From Laetmonice hystrix (Eukaryota): a stretch of DNA of 64,000 nt. Positions 12,607 to 58,149 of the stretch are shown here, one piece after another. A program made the position numbers and the translations under genes. The first letter of the stretch is position 1. The number at the start of each line of letters is the position of its first letter. Under the pieces are notes generated by a model. The model saw only the letters and a program-made list of their open reading frames with translations, was not told where the DNA came from and searched no databases. The DNA is taken from positions 14,322,001 through 14,386,000 of the forward strand of contig OZ249437.1 in NCBI GenBank assembly GCA_965235115.1, given 5' to 3'.

Positions 12607-13074
12607 TTTGGGGTAAGGTTAGGATTAGTGATAGGATTATGAAGAAATATTAAATAATACAACATCACGGACTTCAAGTCCTAGTAATGTAGGTCACGAT
12701 AAAATTAACCCACGTGCATTCAACTGTTCAAGCTGCTCTCAGGTAGACAGTTGAAGCCTGTTATCCGGTCGGCTGTATGAGCACTTCACGTCTCAGAGTT
12801 GGGCTAAATTCCTTCAAGCATAGTGGATTTCTCAAGAGGCATTGGAGACTTCAAGGGAGTAGGGCTATGACTACGTTTTCACTCAGACAGCATCTTTTGG
12901 ACAGATGCCAGTGAAGTTTTCCTCTAGGCGTTGCGCGGGAAACGGCTTCGTTTACGGCTGGTTCCCTGCCCCATCTCCGAGAGGAGTGAGGCAGGGAACC
13001 AGCCAGCATGCCTCGAATATGAACGAATCAAAGGACGTTTAGACCTGCCCGTGCGGTCCTGGTTTGTTGACATC

Positions 13075-16000
13075 ATGGCGACCGCCGAGGCAACATGTCG
13101 ACAATTCCCAGTCAGTTTTTCCTCTCAAACAACATCAAAAACGACTGAAATTTTGATAAAGGAAACCATAGACAATGCCAAAGGTGACAGAGACACCCCT
13201 CCAGGTGCGCAGCTGTCAGAGAGAGCAGCGTTTAGGGCACGGGGAGGTAGGGAAGTCACCGTCTCGCCCGTCGTTGTTGAGTTCCGTCGTCTGTTGCAGA
13301 GCAAGAATTCGGCGGAGGTCGTGCCTGGAGTACGTATTTTAAACTAGGCCTAAAGGACTTTTTTCTCCGTTACATTCGTTATATTTATTCTACGGCTCTC
13401 TATCCGACTATTTAAAAAAATAATTGTTCATTTAAAGTGTCCTTAGACTGAATCTTTTACCCCCAAAAAACCTGGGAACCCAGGCTGCCCCTGGGCTAGT
13501 CCAGGAACCTAGACCCTGTTTCTGCTAGTTTGTTGTCAACAGGGTCTAGCCTAGGAGTTAAGCTTTCAAATCCAGTGGCACCTTGCCACGCCTACCCCCG
13601 TGGCAAACTTCACCGGCTTCACTCACTCACTACGACTGACTCATTACACAAACTGACTCTACCGGTGACAGCAGACACCTTTTTCTCTCTCTTCACACCA
13701 TTATTGGGGTATGTTGATTAATAATACTGAGTTCGTGTGCGGCTGTCGTTTGCAACCCTCTCTGAAATCGTCGATGAATCTGTCGCCATCTTGATTCGAA
13801 TTTGGCTAGCGGTGACGTCATGGGCATGTTTCTGGTAAAAGTGGAATCGCAATGGGAAGTGGACAGCACCACGCTGGCTGGGAATCTCTGTGGTTCGTTC
13901 CGCCTGGCGGCCACATAACAATTCATATGTTCATGACCAATCGGTCAATCCAACATGGCTATACTTCCGTTCGACGGTTGTGTGTGCAAAAAGAACAGGC
14001 AAAACCGTGCACAAAAGTATGCTTTATAAAGACCACAACGCAACACATCACCGTGAATCATACATTAATATCTTTTGTATCTACTTGGCAAGTTTTACCA
14101 CCCAGAGTGATCCCAAAAGGAAGTTATCAGTCGCCGAACGACGCGAACCCCGGTCACTCGAACGTTCAATGTGGTTGCCACGCGCTTTTTCGATTCAACT
14201 GCCAGAGTCTGATACAGACTACATATCAGATATCAGGCTCTGGCTTGTTGGAGTACCCCTGGGCCACTGGCCTGGGCCCCACGCAGACCCCCAAAGTCCA
14301 AACCCCCAGCTTACCGCCGGTGTACATTTCATCCTGTGGAGAACACTGTATTGTTAAACCACTTAACAATTTTGCATCCTGTAGTTGTATAGAGCAGCTA
14401 CTCATGCCCAAGTGTATGTACAAGTAAATAATGAAATCTCTGTCTGTGACATGGAGATACGGCCTACAGGTTATTCTGTACCGTACCTGCCGTGGAAGTT
14501 AGAGAATTCTCGGCATGGAGCCACCAAGTGGTGTAGGTCAGAACTAACTTTGGGCTAACTTTAATCATGCGGTCAGGAAATCACTCTCTGTCTGTGTGAC
14601 CAGAAAACTTTAATTTCTTTATCAGACATGACCTCTACTTTAAATCTATACCTTTAGAATCTGTCAAATATATTTACTTGTGGACGTTTTAATGTCTTTC
14701 TTGTGATGCTGATTTATCTTTTAGATTGCAAACTGTGATCTTCTCCATGCGGTTGTTGGTTTGTATGATGTGTCACTCAGTGATATGACCCCAGAGGTTC
14801 TCTACGCCACAGTCTGCGAAAACTGGGCTCGAACAATCCTGCTGGTCAAGGACATCAAAGGTAAAACCTGAGTCTACCATGGTTTTATAAAACAGATTAC
14901 TATGCCTGGCCATAGTTAGGGGTTGTAATTATATTTCTTCCAGCAGGGAGACCACATTTGGGGTTGTGACACCAATGCTTGTCCCTTTGCAAGATTCTAT
15001 TTTTTCCACAGTACTTAGGGAAACCAAATTTTCATCTTGAGTAGTGATTTTGTGGTGATTTATTTTGCATTGTATACAGAAAGTTTAGAAGGTAGGTTTT
15101 GGCTATTTGTAAAATGGCTACCCTTGACCATTTCAACATTTTGGTGGCAAACCATACTTTGTCTACAATTTTAACTCTTCTTTTTGTTGTACTGTACTTT
15201 TGTATATGTTTGATAGAATATTGCAAAATCACAGAGCTCTAGATTTAGAAATGCAGGATGAGTCTTCTATGATGGTTGTCATGTCAGGATATTATCAGCA
15301 ATGAATAAAGATAAGATTGAATTTTCCACACAGTATACTGCATCACAGAAACTTCTGTACATGTTGACACTCACTCAAGGTACCTGTGCTCGTACCTTTT
15401 TGTTTTTTGATTAGCATAACTTTGCTCCAGTATAAAGGGACTCGAATAAGGTATCCGGTCTTCCATCCCTTCTGCTCTGGACTCAACTGAAATATTTCAG
15501 TTCCTTACAATAAATAGTTTTTATACATTACATGAGGTAGAGTGGGGAAGGTGTGGTAGACAAGGCTTGTGTAGTGCCTGTGCCTTATCTGAGCCATGAC
15601 AATATTGAATCATGTCAGGAATGTTAAGTCTTACGAGGTATAAAATAAATGACATAATTTTAGTGATAAATTATATTCATATAAAATAAAGTTTCTAATG
15701 TGCTATCACTGACCAAGAATCCTAAAAACCTTGACATAACATAATTTGAAATGATATAACATTTTTCAGACACCCTAGAAGAAACAGAACTTCGAAAAAA
15801 GGCAAAGCTAGCAAAACATGGTGAGGGCAGCAGTCAGAAGGAAGAGGTGAAGGGGTGCACTACGTCCAAGGACGAGGACACAAGTCATTCAGTGCCTAAT
15901 TCTGACGTTACGGCAGGTGAAGGGGCTCATAGTGATAAGAAGGGTGAGGACACAAGTCATTCAGAGCCTAATTCTGACATCACGGCAGGTGAAGGGGCTC

Positions 16001-19000
16001 ATAGTGATAAGAAGGGTGAGGACACAAGTCATTCAGAGCCTAATTCTGACATCACGGCAGGTGAAGGGGCTCATAGTGATAAGAAGGGCGAGGACACAAG
16101 TCATTCAGAGCCTAATTCTGACGTTACGGCAGGTGAAGGGGCTGATAGTGATAGGAAGGGCGAGGACACAAGTCATTCAGAGCCTAATTCTAACGTCACG
16201 GCAGGTGAAGGGGCTGATAGTGATAAGAAAGACGTGGATATCCTGGAACCCGAGGAGGAAAAACCAGGGAGGTTCGACGATGTTTTTAGTGACACCGACG
16301 AGGAGCTGGAGGATGGGTAGGTCAGAGGTTGATCTACATACAAGGCAACCTGTAATTAGTTGTAAAATCATTGATCATCCATCTTAATTAAAAGCTTTTG
16401 GGGTCCTGAAGATAAATTTGAAGCAGTCCACCAGCTTATTGTACCACCAGTTAAACAATATCGCAGCATCCTTTTTGTATCATAGTTTCATAATCTAGTT
16501 CTAATCTTGAAATATTTTGATGAAGAAACTGTCTTTTTACTTTCAGTGATGATGACAGTGAAGAGGATTTTTCAACAGGTATAAAAACATTTTTAGCCTC
16601 AGTTGTGGCTCGGCGAGAAGCTCGTGAGAAACACAAGGGACCCTTACAGCCAGATCACATTGGAGTTGAGAACAGGCTGGTGGCTGCCACCACATTTAAG
16701 AAAGTATATTGGTAAGTTTGGTGATAGTATTTCAATATGTGTGAAATTGTAACTGCCATTGGGATTTGCCACCAGTGCTGACTGTTCTGGGAATTTTTTT
16801 CTGGATATTGGATAGTACGTGTCAAATTTGACTGTCGTTGTAAAGGTTTACATGCTGTCAGTTTATAAAAACAAGGCCCTAACCACTGCTTCTACTCTTA
16901 TTTCAGTCCTGTAAAAATATTTATGCATTTGTTAAGACCATATGAAGTTTCGTTCCTGTGAGATCACAGTTTGTATTTCTACAGCAGTAAACCAAGTGAA
17001 AAAGTGATTCACTTAACATTACTTGCTGTGCGGTTGAGGTTTCGCAAGTGGGGCATTGGAAAATATCTACTGCAGGTAAAGTTATTTTAGATTTAAGTCA
17101 TCTTGTAGGTAAATCTCTGAGCAAAGTTTACATACAGTGATGTTTTAGTCATCACTTGTCGTTTTTCCTTGATTTGCTTATAAATTTCCCTTACAAATAA
17201 AAACCTCCTCTACAAGGCCCATAACACTCCATTAAGAGTCATCTTCTATTATGCTTTCACAACCTGGTGGAGAAAATCTTTTATCCGACAGCAAGTAAAG
17301 GATATTTTCTTTTTGTCCAACAGGAAGTGAAGGAAATTTATTTTCATGTGAAGGAAATTTTCTTTTATTCGACAGCAAGTCAAAGACCCACAAGTGGCTG
17401 GTCAGTATGATGCAGTCGTCGTACATGCCGACAATGAAGCCGTTGACTTCTTCCAGCGATATGGATTTACAGATGATACAGTGCTCAATAACAAGTGGAG
17501 GTAGGAACGTTGGCAAGGGGGAGTGGGGTCTGAACTATGCATTAATGAATGCCAAGAGGTCCAGGTAAACAAAGTCTTACGACTAACTTAGTGCATCTTT
17601 TTCAACACAGGTTTGTCGGTTTGCTTGTTTCAGTGAGCTTGCAGAACAGTTCACAAACTGCACCCTCATGTGTTATTTACCGCCGTTTACAGGTAAACTT
17701 TGTTGCCACAGAACTATGTTAGTATGTTGTAGAGTACAAGCTTCGTCAAAACTTCTCATATTCCATTTGTAATTTCCTTCTGTAAGCTGTATGTATATTC
17801 CTAAATGCATACTGGTACATACCCCGGTACCTAAAGTATTGTAATAATTTGACCTGACAAATATTTTTTAATTTAGTGTCCATTCACCGTTGAGAAAAAA
17901 AAATTGTGTCCATTTGTTTCCTAGGTCAAACTATTTTGAGTGAATCATTGCCAGAGTTAGATATCATTGCAATGGAAAGAGAGATAAAAAAGTGGTAAGT
18001 AAGACATTAATTTGTTTTAATATTATTATATAACTTAAAGGAGTGACTGGACCAGATTTTTATATCACCATTAAGGGCTTATAAAAGTCTTCAGAAACAA
18101 TTTCCAACCCCTTTACCATAATTTCTTCATTTCTCCTTGTAAATACGGAATTCTTGACATGTTATTAATTATAAAAGACTTAAAAGGTAAAAAAACATCC
18201 TTAAAAAGCAGTCTGCATATTTTCTAAACTCCAATAACGAATTATTGGTTGGGTGTGTAATCAGGCGGCTGAAAGCACAGGAGGCTTACGTATCTGAGGT
18301 GAGCTGTATGAACAGGATGCGTCATGAAATCATACATCTACGTGCCCTGGTCAGCTCACAACAGGATCTCATCACAAAGCTTGTGTCTGACAACGAGAGC
18401 CTGCGCAAGGAGAAATTTCTCATTGGTATAATTCCTCTTCACCTTTTATGCAGGAAGAATTTGGTTGGTGAATGTGGTTTGAGACAGTTTTTGAATTAGC
18501 TAAATGTTAAAGTTGATCTAAAAGCAATTTATCTGTAGCAGTTTTATTTTGTGTATGTTGAAAGCATTCCATTCTTTTGTTGGCAGAACGAGAATTCCTT
18601 GAATATCGACTTAATGCAGTAAAGTTACCTTTCAGTCAAAGTGATGAAATGGGTGAGTATAAAAATATCACATGGTGAAAGAAAGCTTATCACATGTCAT
18701 TTAAACATTAAAACTTATGCTCTGAACATCCCTACTCTGCTGTTATATGTAAACCGTTTTGTACTGTCATTTTTAGTTAAATTTCCCTCTAACAATCGTA
18801 CAGTGGTAGTCTCAGAACAGAGGTAGTGTTTGAATTTTCCTGTGGCAGTCATACAGTTGCTTTGTCAGACTAGGAGAATTCGTTCTGATTTCAGATGAGG
18901 ACGAGGAGCTGAACACAGAGCGTTTAATGAAGGACTTAGAAGAGGAGGTAGCTCGGACTGCGCGCCGTAAGGATATGTATACTAGTGCAAGGGTTGCAGG

Positions 19001-21704
19001 AGGTAGAACATGTTCTTCTCCTACTCTCACACAACTTATATTGGATAAACAACTTATAAAGTGTACATTCTGACCCTATATTTGACCTCGTGCCAAGATT
19101 CTGTGTCACACTAGCTGTGAGACTATAACTCTATACTTGTGTCCTGTACATGGGACCATCAGAGCGGAGTCGATTCCTCGTCTCCCACGGTCCGTCTAAC
19201 GAGCCCTATTGCCACGGCCGAGACACAGAGGGTTTCTACCTCATCCAGCAGGAGTTCACAGACAGCATGAAGAGAGACGTGACCATCGTCAACCAGCACC
19301 AAGTGAAGATGGTCACCAAGGTAAGGTCGCTTTAATGTAGGACTGGTGTCGAGTGTCTGAGGTGTCTGGGTTTGAGGATTCATAGAACAGGGATGATTCA
19401 CAGAATATATGTACGCCGTACAGTACGGGATCCCTTCTATAGGGGTTCAGTGGTGTGGGATCAAGGATCCAAATCCAGATTTTGAAAAAGGGGGTTCAAC
19501 CAAGTAAATTCTAGAAAAAGGGGTCAGTTGGCCAGTGTTCCTCGAGTCCAAATGATCACCTCATGCTACATGTAATCTCCACATCCACAGAAATTTTGGA
19601 AAGAAAATCAGATACAATATTTCAAAGCTTACCCTTTGGTAGATTTCGTAAGTCTTTCCTTAATCATAAGAGGGGAAGATATCATAGTACTCTATGATTG
19701 CAGTAAGTGTTACTCACCCCCAGGCGATGCTGCCCCCTAGTGTGGAGGAACAATATACCACATGTATTGGATTGCTGAAAGAGCCCTCTATGGTGACAAG
19801 GCTGTACTACTGCGGTGGGCTGGAACAACCAAACAACATTAGTAACATACTTCGGAATGGATTCACAGAAAATGGTCAGTTGTTGTCATCACCATCCTCA
19901 TCATCTACAAGAAGAAGATATTGAGTAGAGCCACAATAGAACATGGATATGTTATACTCTATAATTAATTATGAAACTTGTCTTCTCTTATTCTGAATCA
20001 GATAACATGTGAAAAGTAGTATTTTCATCTTACAGACTTTTCTTTTGGTGAATATGGTCGTGGATTATATTTTTCCAAGTTTCCATCGAAGGCAGCACAG
20101 TTTTCAGCAGTAAGTATTTATATAACACCAGGACCCGGTTTTTTTGTTTATTTTTCCACCGTGAGCAAGGGTGAGCTGAGCTGAGCAAGGGTGAGCATAA
20201 GCTCATTCTCACCGTTTTCTTATTTTTTTAGGTTACTTTTTTCCATGAGGCGTGCTCATGGTGAGCAAGCTCGCGGAAAAACACCACAAAAAACGAAAAC
20301 AGTGAGCAAAACGGTGAGCATGAGCTTCTGCTCACCCTTGCTCAGCTCAGGGCCCGGTTTTTTTGTTTATTTTTCCACCGTGAGCAAGGGTGAGCTGAGC
20401 TGAGCAAGGGTGAGCATAAGCTCATTCTCACCGTTTTCTTATTTTTTTAGGTTACTTTTTCCATGAGGCGTGCTCATGGTGAGCAAGCTCGCGGAAAAAC
20501 ACCACAAAAAACGAAAACAGTGAGCAAAACGGTGAGCATGAGCTTCTGCTCACCCTTGCTCAGCTCAGCTCACCCTTGCTCACGGTAGAAAAGTAAACAA
20601 AAAAACCGGGCCCAGCTCACCCTTGCTCACGGTAGAAAAGTAAACAAAAAAACCGGGCCCTGGTTTCCAGTACTACAACTTATATACACTAATTAAATAA
20701 CCTACTGGTATTGTAGAATTTAACGGTAATCAACACTGAGTTTTAGAAATGTAGACTTAATTCAAAGGTTTATCTGTACTACAAAGATACAAGCAAAATT
20801 AATTAATGTATGAACCCTTCAAGACATTTGAGTTCATTCCCTTAGTATGTCATTAGAAGATCATTTATCTAGGTTGCACTATACAGGGTGACATAAACCA
20901 TAAAAATCGCAAGCGATACCTAGCAAAGCAAATGATGGCCAAATATTAGGGGGTCCAGAGCCGTGTCCCCCCCCTCAGAATTTGCCCATGACCAGAGGTG
21001 GTTTACGTCTGCCAGCTCCATCTTAGACTGGCTGCAGCCATACCCTGTGGATAATAACTATGGTGTGGTTTTCTTACCTTAGTTTGGTAGGTTGATTGTT
21101 GCTGAGGTCGGCCTGGGTCAAACCCAAACGGTGATGAAAAAAGATCGGACCAGAAGCATGGCAGACAGCGGGAATGATTCCATCATTGTGAGTGTGTTCT
21201 CTTCTTTAAAAAAAAACTATACATGTAAGATATGATATGAGAATGGAACAATTTACCTGGTGTTGAGTTTAGACTCATATTGTAACTTTTAATCTCTCCA
21301 AAAATGCTGGTTAAAATCTATGGTGCCCTTTAGTGAAGAGTGAAAAAAATAATAAATGGTCGCCAGGCCTATATTTTTCCTCATTAGAACTGGTCATAGG
21401 TCGTATTTCAAAGAGGTTTTTTGTGCTTCTCAAATTGTCCAAATTGTTCTGCGAATTTGAAAGTCCATTTTGAGACAAATCAACATAAGAAATTCTGCAT
21501 ACAGGCTTTTAGAGATGCTGAGCTTATCGAGAGCACAGGACTGAGAGACTTAACGGCATACATACATTGTTACAGACCCCAGGCCGTCTCGTTAGCTCCG
21601 AGAAGGGTGACAGTGACAGTATGTTGTGTCAGGAGTACATCATCTTCAACGTTCACCAGGCTAAGCCTCTCTACCTCATCGAGTATGCCACTAAGTCTAC
21701 CTAG
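13075..21704 (+). CDS. GCN5-like N-acetyltransferase + coiled coil + PARP-type ADP-ribosyltransferase domain protein, 799 aa
   Basis: Exons 13075-13329, 14725-14860, 15770-16316, 16547-16711, 16985-17075, 17376-17500, 17634-17692, 17925-17994, 18265-18425, 18587-18652, 18895-19002, 19163-19320, 19724-19874, 20036-20109, 21083-21187, 21576-21704. Total 2400 nt, all phases compatible. GNAT motifs LLAVRLRFRKWGIGKYLL and HADNEAVDFFQRYGF. PARP motifs RLYYCGG...ILRNGF, YGRGLYFS, LIVAEVGLG, QEYIIFNVHQAKPLYLIEY. The exon 1 donor (gtacgt) is the least certain junction. Confidence 0.88.
15874..16230 (+). repeat. Coding 72-bp (24-aa) tandem repeat, 5 copies
   Basis: EDTSHSEPNSD(I/V)TAGEGA(H/D)SDKKG units start 72 nt apart (15874, 15946, ...) inside exon 3 of the GNAT-PARP gene. 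Confidence 0.95.
20132..20659. mobile_element. Harbinger-type MITE (about 262 bp) with a second copy of the same family nested inside at 20351-20612
   Basis: TIR g(g/a)cccggtttttt...aaaaaccgggcc. Inner copy flanked by cag/cag, outer copy by cag/ctg. The two bodies are near-identical. Confidence 0.8.
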
Positions 21705-21825
21705 ATCTGGGTCAAGAGGTTGGAGATCTGGGTCAAGTCTGCATAGAACTGGGTCAAGTGGACGTGGATCTGTGTCAAGTCTGCCAAGAACTGGGTCAAG
21801 ATGACATGGATCTGTGTCAGAGTGG
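21702..21825. repeat. Degenerate 21-bp tandem repeat, about 6 copies, starting at the GNAT-PARP stop codon
   Basis: tagatctgggtcaagaggttg / gagatctgggtcaagtctgca / tagaactgggtcaagtggacg ... Confidence 0.8.
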
Positions 21826-30000: not shown

Positions 30001-33000
30001 ACAAATGCGAGAGGAGGAGGAGCGAATGGCTGTTCTTATTCAGGAAGGTCATCAGGTTTATCTAGAATATGTTGAACAAGGACGTCTGGCCAAGATTGAG
30101 AAGGAGGTCAGGATACCAGCGATCAGTTACCAACCTACTCCTGGTCTTAGTCATTTCAGTTATTGAACTAACACATTTTAAGTTAAAAATCACCTTGAGT
30201 CTGAAAGCTTATTGTCAGGGTAAAAATAAAAATCTTATTTTTTATCATCCCCTGGGGCCCGTTGCATAAAAACATCCCCGCCCGCTCCGTTAAAATGTCC
30301 CGTTATAATAGCGGGGACCTTTTAGGTGCCCGTTAAAAAACAACAGTTACCGGGAACATTAGCGGGTGGGAATTTATTATGCAACGCAACGTCCCGTTAA
30401 CTGACCGTTAGCAGCGGATTTAACGGGCGGGGTTTTTTATGCAACGCACCCCTGTCTGGTTAAGCCAAGAGGCAATGCACTGGAGCATACATTTTCTATT
30501 CTTGAACTTGTATCAAAATATTTTCAACATACATGTACATCGATGGCCCAGGGAATTTGATGGTTGCATCATGCCATCTAGCATTGCTTGCCAGAATGCT
30601 AATATGTGGTCTCCTGGAATTGAAATTGGCACCTTCCAACCTGAGGCTAATTTTAGCCCCTGGGTATAAAAGAAAAGCGTTGGACCAGGGACTATTCTCC
30701 AGGAACATGGGCCACATGGGTCAAATAATAATGTGCAGTTTCTTGTGGTAAGAATTGAGTTGAAACAGGAATGGACCTAGACACTAGCTGAAAATAAAGG
30801 GGCCAGGTTTTTTTTTACTGGGAACCAGGTGCTAATAGTGTCAAGGTGCCGGGTTATTTCGATTCCTGAGTCTCTGTGACAGTGCTAGGAAAGTAGAAGG
30901 CTAAGCCTGTTACAACATGATAATTTTGAAGTTGTGATGTAAATAAGTTCCTCTGTGAGGACTTCCTCATCCCTACTAAACTATGTACAAGCATACTTGG
31001 AAATAAAACACCATTTCAATTCAAAAATTCAAATAAAAGAACATAAATGTTGGGTTTTGTAATATTTTTTTGTGATTGACAGGAGAGGCGTGGCCAGCTG
31101 GAGAAGACCAAAGAAGAAGCTGCAGCTTACCGGAGTGAACTAGAGGGTGAGATCTGACAGTCCACAATAATTTAATCGTGAATTTAAAGTTCTGTCTTAG
31201 TTTACAGTGGAACATCGATGTTGAATCAAATGTTGACTAATTCTTTATCTCATTAAACTGTATTAAACATAATGTGATCTTGCAGTTGTGAAAGAAGAAG
31301 CTGAGAAACCAGAGACAGAGGCAAAGGATCAACATAAAAAGGCCTGGGACGGTCAGTGCTGCTCTTCCTCTTCTTCCTGTTCCTTTTGTTTCTACTGCTG
31401 TGTGTGATTGTTGCACATTGTGATTGTATCTGACTATACCAGGAATAACTATGTAGTGTTTGTGCAGTTTGTGCTGCAGATATTCCTATGAAGGTATAGG
31501 TTGCATAAGAGTTGTCGTAAAATTGCAGGTCTTGAAGCTAAACATTAAAACCTTTAGAAACCTTTATTTTGGGTGAGCAACCTTTAAACCCTTTAACCCT
31601 TTCGAGATGGGCCCCTTGCAGTCGAGACGTGCACTAGTGACGACGTAACAACTGAGTGCATGTGCCATAAGGACGGGGCGTTCTGGCAGGCCACATGTGA
31701 TAATGGATTGCCTGGAATACTCCCAATCACTGTCATCTCCAGAAAAATTATCCATGTTTTAGATAAAAGTAGGGATTTGAGTCTCGAGTTGGTCTAGGTC
31801 AAACGCAGCTAGCACTCAATTGTGACGTTATATCACGGTGCTGCACTGTCGCTCTATACACAATGGGCTCTGCCGTAAGTCAAATGATACCACAAGGCAT
31901 CATCCGGCCCCCGCCTGGGAATGCCTCAGGGCATCATCTGGCCCCCGCCCGGAAATGCCTTAAAGCATCACACGTCCTTAATGGGTTAAATTGCTGTTTT
32001 AACCTTTAAACGCCTTTATTTCTCTTATGAAACCTTAAATTTTGTGATATTCTCTTTCTTCACTGTGCAATGATTTATGTGTTATACTGAAGTTTGATTG
32101 TGTCACAATGTCATTGTGCCACATTGTGTCTCCGTCTGGTTGTACTACAATTTGATTGTGGCACAATGTGATTGTGTCTCTGTCTGGTTGTACTAAAGTT
32201 TGATTGTGCCACAATGTGATTGCGTCTCCGTCTGGTTGTACTACAGTCTGATTGTGCCACAATGTGATTGTGTCTCCGTCTGGTTGTACTACAGTTTGAT
32301 TGTGCCACAATGTGATTGTGTCTCCGTCTGGTTGTACTACAGTTTGATTGTGCCACAATGTGATTGTGTCTCCGTCTGGTTGTACTACAATTTGATTGTG
32401 GCACAATGTGATTGTGTCTCTGTCTGGTTGTACTAAAGTTTGATTGTGCCACAATGTGATTGCGTCTCCGTCTGGTTGTACTACAGTCTGATTGTGCCAC
32501 AATGTGATTGTGTCTCCGTCTGGTTGTACTACAGTTTGATTGTGCCACAATGTGATTGTGTCTCCGTCTGGTTGTACTACAGTTTGATTGTGCCACAATG
32601 TGATTGTGTCTCAGTCTGGTTGTACTACAGTTTGATTGTGCCACGATGTGATTGCGTCTCCATCTGGTTGTACTAAAGTTTGATTGTGCCACAATGTGAT
32701 TGTGTCTCAGTCTGGTTGTACTTGTACGACAGTTTGATTGTGCCACAATGTGATTGCGTCTCCGTCTGGTTGTACTAAAGTTTGATTGTGCCACAATGTG
32801 ATTGTGTCTCAGTCTGGTTGTACTTGTACTACAGTTTGATTGTGTCACAATGTGATTGTGTCCCTGTCTGGATGTACTTATACTAAAGTTTGATTGTGCC
32901 ACAATGTGATTGTGTCTCAGTCTGGTTGTACTTGTACTACAGTTTGATTGTGTCACAATGTGATTGTGTCCCTGTCTGGATGTACTTATACTAAAGTTTG

Positions 33001-36000
33001 ATTGTGCCACAATGTGATTGTGTCTCAGTCTGGTTGTACTTGTACTACAGTTTGATTGTGCCACAATGTGATTGTGTCTCTGTCTGGTTGTACTACAGTT
33101 TGATTGTGCCACAATGTGATTGTGTCTCAGTCTGGTTGTACTTGTACTACAGTTTGATTGTGCCACAATGTGATTGTGTCTCCGTCTGGTTGTACTACAG
33201 TTTGATTGTGCCACAATGTGATTGTGTCCCTGTCTGGATGTACTTATACTAAAGTTTGATTGTGCCACAATGTGATTGTGTCCGCCCATGTTACAGAGGT
33301 GAAGGAGAAGCAGCAGACTGAGCGTGAAGAGAAAAGAAAGGTGGACGTGTTTATCGCCCTAGATGTGAACCAGGACGGACTGTAAGCACACTAAACTCTA
33401 GAAACCTATCATTTTCATTGTTATGTACATTCATTGACACCTTCATTTATTCAGTGGTTTTGCAATCTAAATGTTTTTGTATAGGAATGGGCAGGGGCTA
33501 AAATTCCGGAAATAGACTGTAATTGATATGAAGGCATACATTTCATTATGAGTGCAGATCTCTCATGACATGGCGTTTAAACTCTTATTGGCTGTGCTGA
33601 TTGATTTGAATGAAAATTTTTTTTAAATCTCCCAATTACATTTTCTTAGTGTAACAGTAGATGAAATGCAGCGCCATCTGGAGTTTGACATCGATTCCAA
33701 TGGTGAGGTGTCATATGAGGAGGCCAAGGTGAGAGCATTTGATCAGAAAAAGACAACATCCTAAGGATTTATTTAGTAGTTAACGATTCATCATGTTGTG
33801 TTTGTGGTAGACTTTGAAATGACTGTGCAATATATATATTTTTTTAAAATATAATTACTAAGTGACATTTCCACCGAAGCCATTTTTTTTGCTCAGGCAG
33901 ACGACAGTTCATGTAAAATGTGAACTTTATTGAATGAATTTTATAAGTTGAAGAATTTTTTGTTTAACAGGAATATTTGGAAGATAATGACCAGATGGAC
34001 ATGTCGTTATTTGCTGAGAAAGTTTGGCCTAACATCAAGGAGATTTATCGTGATGAAACAACTATCACTGAGCCAGAAAAGACCGAGGAAGATTCAACTG
34101 TAAGTACTTGTGTTCTTGAAGCATCCCTAGACAACGTTTTTAGTTATAATAATCAATCTATTCTAGCTCCAATTAAGTTCCCTAATTAGTGTCAGTTGGT
34201 TGGTCAGTATCTGTTGGTTTGAACACATAAATGTAAGACAGATTTTGTTTCTGAGATGCACTCGTTGAGTTCCGCCCCAGCAAGTTGGCCGTTGATTGCA
34301 ATGATCTTCAGTACTGTTTAAGGTGTTAGTTTGATTTTTATATTACCTGTTAACCTTTGTTTTAAACCTTCCAAATTCCACTGACTCTGAGACCTTTCAG
34401 GTGTTTTAGAGCTAAATAGGAACTATACCCTCGTCCAGCATAGAATTACTCCAGGTTTCTGTTGATAAGATTTATTCTGCGCTCTTACGAGCATTGATCA
34501 CTCCCCGGCAAGGCAGGTCGGTTCCTGTTTTGTTGTCTTTGTGATTGATGATTGTCGCCATGGTAACAGGATCCCACAGAGGAGCCTCCTGAGCTTCCTG
34601 AGCTACATGAAGGAGCTGACGAAGAGGATGATCGTGCTGAGGAGGAGGAGGACGAGGATGAGGGAGAGGTGGGCTGCATGATCTTACACTGTCCAATCAG
34701 CTGTGCCGTGAAACTGTCCAGTCTGCTCATATCTCACGTGGCACTGTCCTGTCAGCTCCAAGTTGACACTGCTGCACAATGTTTAATAATTTACAGGGGC
34801 TTGTTTTTTAATATCTTCAGTAAGACATGACATAAGTCTGGTTTCCTCTTTTTAAGTGACCCCTTCCCATAGTACTTAAAGGGACGATGAATAGATCGGC
34901 CAAAATGTGAGCTTGTGTTGTACTTGGGGATTGGTACATATTGCAGGGTGTTAGAACAATCTCAGATTCCAAGAAAACTGGGAAAAGGGGTTAGCAGATG
35001 CTAAATGCATATAGCCAGGATTGGTAAAATGTAAATAAGCTTATTGCCATATTTTAAAAAAGAACTCGTCTGTAAAATACCAATGGAAACCAAAAAATGA
35101 GGACATGTAAATAATAATGGATCAAGGGGAATTCTTTGCCTCATCGAGACAAGGAAACACTGCGTACCATCAGAAGGGCGAGAATTTTTGTCATTTTGAG
35201 ATAAACAAAAGAAAATGACTCCATCTTTAACCACTTGCCGGCGGGATTAATGTTTAATTATCTGACCCCCTGGTTGGGTTAATTCTGTTAATTACATGTA
35301 TTTTAATGCAAATTTTTGCGTATATATACGTCATCCGTTAGAATGGAAGGTTCTATGCATGCGTATATACACGTCATCCGCCGGGAAGTGGTTAAAAAGA
35401 TGACATTGATGAAGTGGGTGTGATGTCCATTAACAGGAGGAGGAGATAGAGGAGGCCGGGGAGGGTAATTCTCACCGGTCCTCTCGCCGCGCTAATGGAG
35501 ACATGGAGGACAGTGACAGTTCCTTACATATGGTACTCGAGTTTACATCTCACACCCTGCTTCTGGTTATGTGTGCCTCAGTTTTAATGCATGCTTTGGG
35601 TGTGGCATGTAATGGGCATGGCATTATGGGGATGGGCTATGCAATGGGCATGGTGTGCAGGGGGCATGTTATTCAAGGGGCGTGGCATGCAATGGGCGTG
35701 GCATGTAGGGGGCGTGGCATGCAATGGGCGTGGCATGTAGGGGGCATGGCATGCAGGGGGCGTGGCGTGCAGGGATGTTCTGTGCTGTTTGAGTGGGTAT
35801 CCAGGGTGTTCATAAGAAAAAGAAAAAGACCCTGAGTATAATGTTCATTGGGGCCTACATGTCGTCATACTGTGGTTATTTGTGTTGTGTTCAGGGATGA
35901 AAGTTTTCAGGAAATTTCCTGAAATCAGGAAATTTGAAAAAATCCCCCCCCCCCACAAGAAATAACACCCAAAAAAGGAAATAGGCCTAGATCTAGAATA

Positions 36001-47349: not shown

Positions 47350-48166
47350 CCAGGCGCAGAGGCCGTGAAATGTTATCACCTTGCCACACTGACTGATTAA
47401 AGTCACGGATGGATCGAGGTGGCATCTGTGTCGAGAACTTCAGGACTTAGCACGGCCAACAAGACATTGGAATGCCCTCCCTGTGAGTGTACAAGTGTTG
47501 GCTGCCCTCAGGTACAGGAAGTTTTCAAGCAGCCACTCCCGATTCTCCGTTTCACGAAATGTGCATAACGTAGCTAATGCTGTGGTGGACAGACTTTTGC
47601 AGAGGCATACAAGCTTTCCCAGGGACAACTACGTGCAGAGGAGAACAAAGGAGGCATTTTATGAACTTGCCCATTTCCCCAACAGAGGAGAAGAGGCATA
47701 GGGGGCTACAACAGGGCGCACCGTAGTATACTCGCTCAGTATGGAATGCAGTCTCGATCATCCAGACCCTCAGCGACTGTATGGAATGTGGAAGTTGCGT
47801 TTCCGGTGCCTACACAAGACTGGCGGCTGTCTAATATTCTCTGTTGAGCGTTGCCTGAAGATTATAGTAACGACTGCCATCTTGCACAATATATGTATTC
47901 AGCGCAACATCCCGCTTCCAGATGACGCCGATGAAGACATTGGCGATGATGACGACAATGACGAGGACCAGGATGAAGTGAACGTTTCAGAAGACGACGA
48001 CGTACAACATGTCGCCTCGACCTTGGATAAAGTGTACATCATAATAAACTATTCAAACCTAAATATTACGACAAAAATGTTCCGTGTTATTTGTCCGAAC
48101 ATCTTGGGCTACAACATCAGTAATAAAAAAATGGTATCTGAATCAACCGACAAACGAACCGAATGA
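47350..48166 (+). pseudogene. HARBI1-like transposase with the catalytic core deleted
   Basis: N-terminal part LARPTRHWNALPVSVQVLAALRY...FYELAHFPN runs almost directly into YNRAH...YGMWKLRFRCL...GGCL...AILHNICI. No IDGTH- or GDSGY-like motifs seen; frameshifts present. Confidence 0.85.
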
Positions 48167-48249
48167 GAAAAAATAAGAAATAAGAAATAAAGTAAAATAA
48201 GATTTTAAAAAATAATAAGAAAAAAAAGAAACAAAATAAGCTAGGTCCT

Positions 48250-49143
48250 TTACGGGTTAAAGAGACAGTACCTGTCATCAGTTTCATAATTCGTGCGGTT
48301 TTCACACAGTTTCTCTAGCAGTGCCAGTTTCTTTTTCTCAACCTCTAACCGTTCTTTTTCCACATTTAGGCGGTCCTTTTCGATAGTTAAACGGTCCTTT
48401 TCTATTTCAATAAGCTCTAGTGTTGGATCGTTTGTCGACTTCCCGACGGCTGCACTCACTTTAGTACGGTCCTTCTTTGAGGGGGTAGGGGTGGGGAATG
48501 TGGTGGAAGGTATCGTACGTTGTACCAACATTGATTTCGGCTTTGTTGATGGGAACGCCACTGGAGACATCGTCATGGAGCTCTCATCAGTTTTAACAGA
48601 CATTTCGTCAGTCAACCCGTTACCTTCACTTGTACCTGGACGTGGATTCATCATCATGGACTTGTTGTCCATGGTCACAGCAATGCCGTCACTTGTTTGG
48701 GTTGGTGTACTCGGAACACTTGGGGGAATAACTGGACTTAACTCAGATGTCACATCAATGGAGTCTATCCTACGGTGTATCCCTTCCGTCGCTGTCTTTC
48801 CCAAAATAGCCAATACCTTTTCTTCTTGTTCACTGACTGGGATGTTCTCAGCTTTACCGCCACCAGTTTTCTGCTTCTCTTTTTTCCGCTGCATTTCCTT
48901 GCCTTTCGTGCAGCTGGCCCAATCCTGCCATTTCCGTCGCACCTCATCCATAGTACGTGATACTGTAGATACTGCATTGACCTTTTTGGTGACATCGTTC
49001 CACGCAGCCCTTTTCTTTTCGTTTGTAATAACATCCGTGAACTTGTTGAAGATTACACTCTTCCTAGCTCCGACAGCTTCAACGAGAACATTAAGTTCAG
49101 CGTGAGCAAACCTTGGTCTCCTCTTCTTGGTTTCTTTGGGCAT
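48250..49143 (-). CDS. Harbinger Myb/SANT-like DNA-binding protein, 297 aa, intact ORF
   Basis: MPKETKKRRPRFAHAELNVLVEAV...KRAAWNDVTKKVNAVSTVSRTMDEVRRKWQDW (Myb/SANT-like). C-terminal heptads EKDRLTIEKDRLNVEKERLEVEK. Confidence 0.88.
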   Translation of the reverse strand: MPKETKKRRPRFAHAELNVLVEAVGARKSVIFNKFTDVITNEKKRAAWNDVTKKVNAVSTVSRTMDEVRRKWQDWASCTKGKEMQRKKEKQKTGGGKAENIPVSEQEEKVLAILGKTATEGIHRRIDSIDVTSELSPVIPPSVPSTPTQTSDGIAVTMDNKSMMMNPRPGTSEGNGLTDEMSVKTDESSMTMSPVAFPSTKPKSMLVQRTIPSTTFPTPTPSKKDRTKVSAAVGKSTNDPTLELIEIEKDRLTIEKDRLNVEKERLEVEKKKLALLEKLCENRTNYETDDRYCLFNP

Positions 49144-49431
49144 GATTATAAGGAATGCAGAGAGCATGGACTGGCACTGGCTATCTCCCTGCCTGTATGA
49201 GAACACACCCACCCAACAAGCAAGAATGGCCGCCGCCCCCCAGTTCCCGAAGCCATCGTTATGCAGGTAATTGACGACATCGTTAGGGCCAAGAACGAGA
49301 GACTACCGAGAACGTTCACGAGGGTTAGCCGAAGCCATCGTTAGCTGATCGTTTGCGTTTCGTCAATAACGAGCACGTTAAGCACCGTCTTCCATCGTTC
49401 AGCGTCAATGCAGGTCATTCCTGCAGGTGAC

Positions 49432-56430: not shown

Positions 56431-56865
56431 CTCCACTCATCTATGGGTTCAGGAAGTAGCTGCTGACATCTGACGGTCAACTACAGGTGGCGCTGCGATC
56501 GGGAGTGGAACTCCCATTGAATTGTAAAAAGATCGTCTTGCCACCGGGTTGTGTTTGTTTTTTTCATTAACCACAGGAGAACAATGGCCTTTGACCTAAT
56601 TTAGGTTTCTAAGAAGAATATACACCAAACGACCATAGGAGGTAGAAGTATTTTCCATTAGGCCTACTTTCTGCAGATTATCGTGTTTAACCATCCCTTG
56701 AACAACAGCGTTACTAAACTGGGGGTCCGTAGATAGAAACTGCTAGCATGCAATCGGTATAACTAGTTTTGGCATAAGCGTCTCGGAATCTATGCATGAC
56801 ACCTTGTTCAAAGTGTTGTCTCGCTGCGCATAGTTTGGAGTTGTACGCTTCTATCATTGGTGACC

Positions 56866-58149
56866 ATGGCTTGGTCGTGTCAAAGTCTACTTTCGCTCTG
56901 CTTGGTCGTGCTGACTGGATGTACCATAATCTTCAATTTAAAGAGCCTTCAGTTTTCACGTCTAAATGAAAAGTTTTGGATGAAACCTGTGAACAGGTCG
57001 ATGGACTTTGAATACAAGCGTCAGCTAGAAGGCAGGTGGTATCCGTCCAATAACCGAAGATTTGTATTTTTCACGGCGTATTATGACGAAAGAATACAGT
57101 CAGTGCGTCCCTTTATACGGGTTCTTGGGATAGGAACAAGAGAGAACACCACGTTTCACTGCTTACTGCAGTGGGGAAACACTAGGATGTGTACAGGAGA
57201 AGCTACGAAACAAGCCATAGACCTATATGATGCAGGCACCAAACCATTGATAGCACTTTTCTTCTTGTGTAATGTCCCAATGGACGCGGTCCCAGAATAC
57301 GTTCATTTGGCACATTCCAGCGCTCAATGTCATCAGATGGCGGAGAACCTGACAACACCACTTACTTCGATCAGAGTTATAACGGTAGAAATGATGCGCC
57401 ATTGGCCAGGTCGGTCTGAATTTACAGTTTGTGTGTCACCTGTGCGTATCTCCAATCCAATCCCTGTGATAAGAATGATTGAATCCAACATTTTCTTTGG
57501 GGCGGACCGATTTACTTTATACAATCACAGCATTTCTGCTCGTCTGGACCGTCTGTTAGCCATGTACGTAGCAGAGGGAAAGATAGAAGTTGTTCAGTGG
57601 AAGAGTAAGAAATATATAACCGAGCACCATGTCCATTATTATGGACAAACATTGGCAATAAACGATTGTATTTACCGCCACCTTGGAAGGTCGGCTTATG
57701 TCGTCATCACCGACCTGGACGAAGTCATTGTACCACGGAGTCGAGCAACTTGGCAGGAAATGATGGCTTCACTCAGAACGCCTGTTGCTGGAAGTTACTC
57801 GTTTAGGCACGTGCGCTTCAAACACAACTCTAAAAAGGAAAATAGTCTGGATTATTTCGATGCAGATGTTCGTACTAAGAATACTCTCCGGTGGTCAGTT
57901 AGGTCGAAATTGATTATAGATCCAGAAAGGATCCAATCAGTCGGAGTTCATATTGCTTTCCTTATGGTGCCTGGATACAAACCCTTCCTCGTTCAGCCAG
58001 AGGACGGTCTGCTACACCATTACCGCAATGGGATCGGCGGTAACAAAGGTTATGTTCGGGAGATTTATCTTAAACAATTTAGACCGGATTTTAAAAAGCA
58101 GTTAGCCAACCGCATGAGAAAACTACATAATGCTGCAATAAACATTTAA
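56866..58149 (+). CDS. Glycosyltransferase family 92 (galt-1-like) type II membrane protein, intronless, 427 aa
   Basis: N-terminal TM anchor, FTAYYD, FTVCVSP, GADRFTLY, HYYGQTLAINDCIYR, DLDEVIVP (DxD) and LLHHYR motifs in one uninterrupted ORF. Confidence 0.92.
   Translation: MAWSCQSLLSLCLVVLTGCTIIFNLKSLQFSRLNEKFWMKPVNRSMDFEYKRQLEGRWYPSNNRRFVFFTAYYDERIQSVRPFIRVLGIGTRENTTFHCLLQWGNTRMCTGEATKQAIDLYDAGTKPLIALFFLCNVPMDAVPEYVHLAHSSAQCHQMAENLTTPLTSIRVITVEMMRHWPGRSEFTVCVSPVRISNPIPVIRMIESNIFFGADRFTLYNHSISARLDRLLAMYVAEGKIEVVQWKSKKYITEHHVHYYGQTLAINDCIYRHLGRSAYVVITDLDEVIVPRSRATWQEMMASLRTPVAGSYSFRHVRFKHNSKKENSLDYFDADVRTKNTLRWSVRSKLIIDPERIQSVGVHIAFLMVPGYKPFLVQPEDGLLHHYRNGIGGNKGYVREIYLKQFRPDFKKQLANRMRKLHNAAINI

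Follow-up and report, generated by a model that had tools for sequence, protein, structure and literature searches.

The stretch of DNA analyzed here, a window of 64,000 nucleotides from the genome of Laetmonice hystrix (all positions below are those of the window), carries on its plus strand at 13075–21704 one intact, single-copy gene of 16 exons. Its predicted product consists of an N-terminal GCN5/PCAF-like histone acetyltransferase (HAT) domain, a helical linker, and a C-terminal domain with the PARP catalytic fold. That a single polypeptide combines these two domains had been proposed in a preliminary description of the same DNA, and this architecture is now borne out by Pfam, profile, and Foldseek evidence. 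Judged from its alignments, the gene is an orthologue of an uncharacterized metazoan GNAT–linker–PARP family that reaches from cnidarians to amphioxus. The encoded protein is related by sequence to both GCN5/PCAF and the PARPs and departs from each of these families at one defining catalytic residue: It shows the two family-specific substitutions His377, which occupies the position of the GCN5 glutamate, and Cys677, which occupies the position of the PARP histidine.

The gene model was obtained by joining the open segments of 13000–21800 at canonical AG/GT sites that keep the reading frame, which yields 16 exons with 2400 nt, corresponding to 799 codons and a stop (Table 1). This rebuild came out identical to the frame-continuous model of 16 exons and 799 residues given in the preliminary description, and every motif quoted there is found in the rebuilt translation. 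All 15 introns are of the GT–AG type, the phases agree at 15 of 15 junctions, and a good polypyrimidine tract is present at most acceptors. With a GC content of ~37–50% and no runs of N, the window is animal DNA. Single exons gave no significant match to the PDB, where only family profiles succeeded, and the Pfam matches of lone exon pieces are sub-threshold. These matches are collinear: Positions 53–74 of the GNAT profile (exon 5) are followed by 86–110 (exon 6), and positions 81–102 of the PARP profile (exon 14) by 160–198 (exon 16, E 2e-4), an order that is far beyond chance. We conclude that the gene is single-copy because a family-specific PARP profile matches only the exons of 13075–21704 in the 627-Mb assembly of the species. 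A reading of the locus as a pseudogene was rejected. Within intron 14, at 20129–20660, a tandem duplication of 218 bp (two copies, 99% matches) is followed by two copies of a 47-bp repeat, together with inverted GC-rich segments; these repeats give the appearance of a small repetitive element that was inserted recently. A further tandem repeat of 42/21 bp (21693–21819) starts a few bases ahead of the stop codon and runs into the 3′ flank.

The family was retrieved with exon 13 alone (50 residues) as the query against a library of 1.84 billion proteins, which returned full-length proteins of 441–695 residues that were matched near their C-terminus. Pfam places a GNAT and a PARP domain in the same orthologues: Both surpass the curated cut-offs in P0014 and P0028, the scores for PF00644 range from 26.9 to 45.5 bits (the upper value being that of P0021), and those for PF13673 reach 48 bits. 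Wider searches, which were word-seeded and whose counts refer to the matches listed, gave more than 60 proteins of 600–800 residues with the precomputed pair PF13673 and PF00644 from more than 60 invertebrate species, in line with the earlier expectation that uncharacterized homologues might already be in databases. The members come from mollusks (gastropods, bivalves, and a chiton), the brachiopod Lingula, the nemerteans Tubulanus and Lineus, one bryozoan, the annelids Paralvinella, Lamellibrachia, Owenia, and Dimorphilus, echinoderms (sea stars, urchins, a brittle star, a sea cucumber, and a crinoid), hemichordates, amphioxus (four Branchiostoma taxa), and anthozoans (Nematostella, Actinia, Acropora, Orbicella, and others); examples of the orthogroup are Lingula LOC106172764, Lottia LOTGIDRAFT_233022, and Nematostella LOC116620093. 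Proteins of vertebrates, tunicates, insects, and nematodes are not among the matches listed, which is suggestive of an absence of the family from these groups. Collinear alignments of the window protein with its orthologues show 45–52% identity: The end-to-end alignment with Lingula reaches 52% identity and 662 summed bits (residues 1–143 and 276–796 of the model against 1–145 and 193–719 of 721 in Lingula), and the protein of the annelid Paralvinella is 51% identical over residues 276–796, with an additional N-terminal block. In the databases, the members are named ‘uncharacterized’, ‘hypothetical’, or only after a domain. Those of Lingula, Lottia, and Potamilus bear the automatic UniRef name ‘glucosamine-phosphate N-acetyltransferase’, a label that is probably wrong because the profile search described below ranks GCN5/PCAF over GNA1.

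The N-terminal half is one HAT domain of the GCN5 type that is split between strands beta2 (TILLVKD) and beta3 (VENRLVAATTF); we assign it in this way because its best profile and Foldseek matches are GCN5/PCAF proteins and the Foldseek alignments span the disordered stretch. A profile of 32 members, compared with all PDB sequences, found Tetrahymena GCN5 (tGCN5, 9e-8), human KAT2A (1.3e-5), PCAF (8e-5), and yeast Gcn5 (yGcn5, 3e-4), with GNA1, serotonin N-acetyltransferase, and the NAA enzymes ranking below all four. The AlphaFold2 model of the Lingula HAT segment has a core of high confidence and, in addition, a disordered stretch with a predicted local distance difference test (pLDDT) score <50. 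The top 40 Foldseek matches of this model are almost all GCN5/PCAF, with template modeling (TM) scores by target of 0.74–0.80 in alignments of ~315 columns extending across the disordered stretch. Besides providing the best profile match and the best structural match, GCN5/PCAF (KAT2A/KAT2B as well as the Tetrahymena and yeast enzymes) share with this half the order of secondary structure elements, motif A (RxxGxG), the motif ‘ADN-A--F/YF---GF’, and the segment ‘TLM-C-L-P’. Conservation of these elements was counted over 78 family sequences, with lower denominators where a column covers fewer of them: Within motif A, which reads RKWGIG at residues 388–393, the arginine is found in 73/78, the first glycine in 62/78, and the second glycine in 78/78 sequences. 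The GCN5-like ADN-A--FF---GF motif is conserved as well (aspartate of ADN in 76/78), as is the ‘TLMCYLP’ tail. The family differs from GCN5/PCAF by the fused PARP fold, by an acidic disordered insert of 100–215 residues, and by the residue at the position of the general base (tGCN5 E122, yGcn5 E173): The hidden Markov model (HMM) alignment with tGCN5 sets the family segment ‘ervihltll’ against ‘QRFAEVAFL’ and thereby replaces the glutamate with histidine or glutamine. Histidine is found in lophotrochozoans including the window protein, and glutamine in deuterostomes and cnidarians. Moreover, the family is not orthologous to KAT2. In Pfam scans of full-length orthologues and in the precomputed Pfam lists, neither a PCAF-N region nor a bromodomain is reported, only GNAT and PARP families.

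In the window protein, the acidic insert comprises ~215 residues, among them 60 aspartates and glutamates, and is rich in serine and threonine. It contains a species-specific tandem repeat of five 72-bp copies (15868–16229), that is, units of 24 residues with 95% matches according to Tandem Repeats Finder. The Lingula counterpart of the insert has a pLDDT <50. The segment between the two domains had been called helical and heptad-like in the preliminary description, of which the first part holds: Residues ~470–560 are conserved and include a stretch of 60 residues that is free of proline and glycine, which is consistent with long helices. The second part is not supported: Although hydrophobic residues occupy 12/17 a/d positions in the best register, a periodicity of 3.5 residues was not significant against shuffled sequences (0.09–0.2). 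When two copies of the Lingula linker (residues 392–475) were modeled as a homodimer, a score of 0.53 was obtained, compared with 0.35 for the best control, which counts neither for nor against a dimer. The middle segment (~100 residues) is therefore best described as a conserved helical linker, not as a proven coiled coil.

For the C-terminal half, the full-family profile recovered from the PDB PARP4 (4e-9), tankyrase-1/2 (4e-8 to 3e-7), and PARP3 (3.5e-7), followed by PARP1, 2, and 10. The AlphaFold2 model of the Lingula PARP domain is confident (pLDDT 89.8, predicted TM score 0.85) and superimposes in Foldseek with the catalytic domains of tankyrases at a TM score of ~0.70. Since the same model is about equally close to the Swiss-Prot models of PARP1/2/3, tankyrase, PARP10, and ZAP, this half appears to form a PARP-fold lineage of its own and not a recent offshoot of a single clade. 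In the window itself, the exon pieces reach 14.6 and 21.2 bits against PF00644 and stay below the cut-off of 26.7 because the domain is split over five exons. The worry, raised in the preliminary description, that profile searches might support neither domain can nonetheless be dismissed, as profile and Foldseek searches support both. With tankyrase-1/2, PARP4, and PARP3, which belong to the H-Y-E clade, the family shares the GxGxYF motif, ‘SK-A--FS’, and the catalytic glutamate in ‘QEY’. It differs from them by a cysteine in place of the triad histidine and an insertion of 3–4 residues after it, and it is devoid of the ankyrin, SAM, WGR, BRCT, vWA, and helical regulatory domains of named PARPs. 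According to sequence, the triad is Cys-Tyr-Glu instead of His-Tyr-Glu because the HMM alignment with tankyrase-1 sets the family residues Y-y-C-G-s on L-F-H-G-S with high posterior probability. A triad Y-Y-E, in which the second tyrosine of LYYCG would be the equivalent of the histidine, had been considered and is ruled out by this alignment in favor of the cysteine. The tyrosine of the triad (Tyr709, GxGxYF) is conserved in 66/70, the glutamate (Glu777, QEYIIF) in 66/67, and the serine of the pocket in 63/70 sequences.

Because both domains were derived from a frame-continuous model, two neighboring genes, one encoding the GNAT domain with the linker and the other the PARP domain, might have been joined falsely, and the preliminary description had named this outcome as its own refutation. 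Some family members could be taken to speak for such a division: A protein of the sponge Dysidea avara (397 residues) and a partial tick protein have the HAT part and the helical part but no PARP domain, and a predicted nemertean isoform stops within that domain. However, both domains lie in one open reading frame (ORF) in more than 50 independent annotations from nine phyla as well as in intron-free contigs, and the intron that separates the linker from the PARP domain (exons 11/12) measures just 160 bp in a gene whose phases agree throughout. Furthermore, intron positions are common to the window gene and its Lingula orthologue: In the Lingula gene, which extends over 12.3 kb, tblastn mapping yields boundaries that coincide in protein position with 14/15 of those in the window, inside and between both domains, with one extra intron that falls within exon 9 of the window gene. 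Finally, a 2513-bp contig from a sequencing run of another species contains an unbroken ORF of 703 residues in which both domains are encoded, flanked by untranslated sequence. This intron-free contig is most simply a transcript, since the gene carries ~15 introns in genomes. The two-gene reading is contradicted by the ORFs of the family, the shared intron positions, and the cDNA-like contig alike, and we rejected it as next to impossible.

Some of the shorter proteins deserve a description of their own. The sponge protein (P0104) and the tick protein (P0103, Ixodes hexagonus, 444 residues, partial) match residues 48–550 and 87–532 of the model, respectively, and end before the PARP domain; this fold was either gained after the divergence of sponges, or lost or mis-annotated in these cases. 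In Tubulanus polymorphus, isoform X2 (P0008) stops in the PARP domain just past the YF motif, and isoform X1 (P0082) has the whole domain, which hints at alternative 3′ ends that would give a HAT-only product. In Lingula, the gene is arranged head to head with DHX29, which was not found in the window by tblastx.

Among known PARPs, PARP13/ZAP, which is a good structural match of the family, and PARP9 likewise have no NAD+-anchoring histidine. Their triads are Y-Y-V and Q-Y-T, respectively, and have thus lost the glutamate as well, whereas the family keeps both the tyrosine and the glutamate near-invariant. In the survey by Citarelli et al. (2010, PMC2964712), land-plant PARP3 (clade 1D) is the only reported case of a cysteine at the histidine's position with the glutamate kept; it differs from the family in that the tyrosine is also replaced (C-V-E) and in its PARP1-like architecture with WGR and regulatory domains. 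The activity of land-plant PARP3 is still unknown (PMC6479469). Neither a fusion of a GNAT or acetyltransferase domain with a PARP domain nor the locus names of the members came up in the open-access full text searched, in the PARP surveys PMC2964712 and PMC4245714, or in a preprint of 2026 on the coupling of ART domains. The family is already present in public databases, as unnamed proteins with automatic domain labels, and its architecture appears to be unstudied.

As the best explanation overall, we consider it fairly probable that the protein combines a HAT half of the active type with a PARP fold that serves in cis as a weak mono-ADP-ribosyltransferase or as a regulatory module. We propose that the HAT half would still bind acetyl coenzyme A (acetyl-CoA), given the conservation of motif A (RxxGxG) and of the GCN5-type motif ADNxAxxFFxxxGF. 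The missing general base might be substituted by His377 or, in the glutamine lineages, by the aspartate at i+2. Protein acetylation is the likeliest N-terminal activity, given that the elements for acetyl-CoA binding are preserved and that this half is most closely related to protein lysine acetyltransferases, and we deem activity of this half somewhat more probable than its opposite. Acidic tracts occur in histone-binding proteins; the likeness of the acidic insert to these tracts suggests that the HAT half would acetylate basic, histone-like proteins, which the insert would help to hold. The PARP-fold half keeps the tyrosine and serine of the nicotinamide pocket and the catalytic glutamate under strong constraint, and the NAD+-anchoring histidine is gone. 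It might act as a weak mono-ADP-ribosyltransferase or as a regulatory module that binds and senses NAD+/ADP-ribose in cis with the HAT domain: We regard these two roles as about equally probable, each of them tentatively and somewhat below an even chance. A purely structural role seems less likely, and polymerase activity is unlikely.

Several observations weigh against this explanation. At the position of the GCN5 general base, 53 members have histidine, 23 have glutamine, and none has glutamate; the glutamine lineages mostly have an aspartate at i+2, and some corals combine glutamine with asparagine and offer no acidic residue nearby. At the position of the PARP histidine, cysteine is found in 66/72 sequences, alanine in three, and serine, valine, and methionine in one each, with histidine in 0/72. 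The assignment of the catalytic residues in both halves was made from HMM alignments and not from inspected coordinates, and it is composition alone that suggests a nuclear localization, histone substrates, and the role of the acidic insert. For L. hystrix itself, the transcript was deduced from the uninterrupted frame and from relatives (of the four runs that contain the stretch, all belonging to one study, none is on record as RNA). In addition, the loss of the triad histidine goes along with inactivity in PARP13 and PARP9. No activity was found for either of these two proteins (PMC6479469).

Two other explanations pull in opposite directions. At one extreme, the protein might be a true dual writer, in which both halves are efficient, acetyl and ADP-ribose groups are placed on the same or neighboring targets, and each activity gates the other. 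The domains have been kept fused since before the cnidarian–bilaterian split, and the cofactor-pocket motifs are strongly constrained in both halves, including the PARP-fold glutamate, which is needed for polymer elongation and missing from most mono-ADP-ribosyltransferase PARPs; moreover, the cysteine at the histidine position is near-invariant, which suggests function rather than decay. However, every member is without the canonical NAD+-anchoring histidine and without the GCN5 general base, and we consider efficient catalysis by both halves improbable, at about one chance in four. A coupling of acetyl-CoA- and NAD+-dependent modification had been suggested in the preliminary description, for chromatin, stress, or innate immunity; the replaced catalytic residues, which were not noticed there, weaken this suggestion, and the analysis brought up nothing in favor of a role in stress or innate immunity. 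At the other extreme, the protein would be a double pseudoenzyme or scaffold, whose folds are kept as binding modules for CoA/NAD+ metabolites or partner proteins, like PARP13/ZAP, TASOR, and plant RCD1/SRO. This would fit the replacement of one canonical catalytic residue in each domain and the presence of the inactive PARP13 and of RCD1/SRO1 among the good Foldseek matches, yet the catalytic glutamate, the YF motif, the pocket serine, motif A, and the ADN motif have stayed near-invariant over a very long divergence, whereas known pseudo-PARPs have mostly lost several such residues; we rate a double pseudoenzyme as less probable still. Searches of the open-access literature found no biochemical data on any member. 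In the boldest reading, the family would be a new class of animal chromatin or signaling enzyme that performs both acetylation and ADP-ribosylation from a single polypeptide and whose Cys-Tyr-Glu site differs from all characterized PARPs in its chemistry or in how it is regulated, which might, for example, be redox- or thiol-linked; this class would have arisen by the time of the cnidarian–bilaterian ancestor and been lost toward vertebrates. We consider this reading improbable, too, at about one chance in four.

Acetylation and ADP-ribosylation draw on the central metabolites acetyl-CoA and NAD+, and their cross-talk on chromatin is known from separate enzymes. For this cross-talk, a protein family that joins a GCN5-type HAT to a PARP fold and ranges from cnidarians to amphioxus would offer a natural ‘Rosetta stone’, and its PARP site combines a cysteine in place of the supposedly indispensable histidine with a retained glutamate of the polymerase type. 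Should both halves be inactive, the family would be a clean case of paired pseudoenzyme evolution. Its absence from vertebrate, fly, and worm models among the matches listed probably explains why it has not been studied; tractable species that possess it are Nematostella, oysters, sea urchins, sea stars, and amphioxus.

Table 1. Exons of the GNAT–linker–PARP gene in the window, with the encoded residues and the elements assigned to them.
Feature	Position	Strand	Content
Exon 1, residues 1–85	13075..13329	+	Start codon, weakly conserved N-terminus, first HAT strand VVVEF; donor gtacgt; aligns with Lingula P0060 from residue 1
Exon 2, residues 86–131	14725..14860	+	HAT helices alpha1/alpha2 and strand beta2 (LLHAVVGLYDVSLS..., TILLVKD); near-invariant columns; N-terminal part of Tetrahymena GCN5 aligned in the right order
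Exon 3, residues 131–313	15770..16316	+	Acidic Ser/Thr-rich disordered insert between HAT beta2 and beta3; 72-bp x5 tandem repeat 15868–16229
Exon 4, residues 313–368	16547..16711	+	End of acidic insert, helix, HAT strand beta3 (VENRLVAATTF)
Exon 5, residues 368–398	16985..17075	+	HAT strand beta4 with His377 (17010–17012); motif A RKWGIG (17043–17060); from Pfam GNAT piece matches, HMM alignment, column counts
Exon 6, residues 399–440	17376..17500	+	GCN5-type HAT motif B (HADNEAVDFFQRYGF); Pfam Acetyltransf_10 86–110, E 0.0023; aligned with tGCN5 ‘YADNFAIGYFKKQGF’
Exon 7, residues 440–460	17634..17692	+	GCN5-type C-terminal segment (FTNCTLMCYLPPF); aligned with tGCN5 ‘GGTLMeCYIhP’
Exon 8, residues 460–483	17925..17994	+	Start of helical linker
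Exon 9, residues 483–537	18265..18425	+	Conserved helical segment without Pro/Gly
Exon 10, residues 537–559	18587..18652	+	Continuation of helical linker
Exon 11, residues 559–595	18895..19002	+	Acidic/charged linker; 160-bp intron before first PARP exon; intron position as in Lingula
Exon 12, residues 595–647	19163..19320	+	PARP fold: N-terminal helix and first strand
Exon 13, residues 648–698	19724..19874	+	PARP strand LYYCG; Cys677 (19811–19813) at position of triad His; ‘elYycGs’ aligned with tankyrase-1 ‘RMLFHGS’; profile match in own genome E 8e-13
Exon 14, residues 698–722	20036..20109	+	GxGxYFS motif; triad Tyr709 (20068–20070), Ser715; Pfam PARP 81–102
Exon 15, residues 723–757	21083..21187	+	Central PARP strands (LIVAEVGLG ... 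NDSII)
Exon 16, residues 758–799 and stop	21576..21704	+	QEYIIF with triad Glu777 (21633–21635), last strand; Pfam PARP 160–198, E 2e-4

Elsewhere in the window, a single-exon ORF of 430 residues on the plus strand (56857–58149) strongly matches glycosyltransferase family 92 (PF01697, E 1.9e-45) and has an N-terminal hydrophobic stretch. At 47741–49212, a minus-strand ORF of 320 residues with a Myb/SANT-like DNA-binding domain (PF13873, E 8e-21) is adjoined by a plus-strand ORF of 141 residues that has an acidic tail and no Pfam match; the two may have been left behind by a gene pair of transposon origin. The overlapping long ORFs on the minus strand at 32035–33289 consist wholly of short tandem repeats (HNHIVAQSN...) and represent a minisatellite-like array whose coding nature is not obvious.

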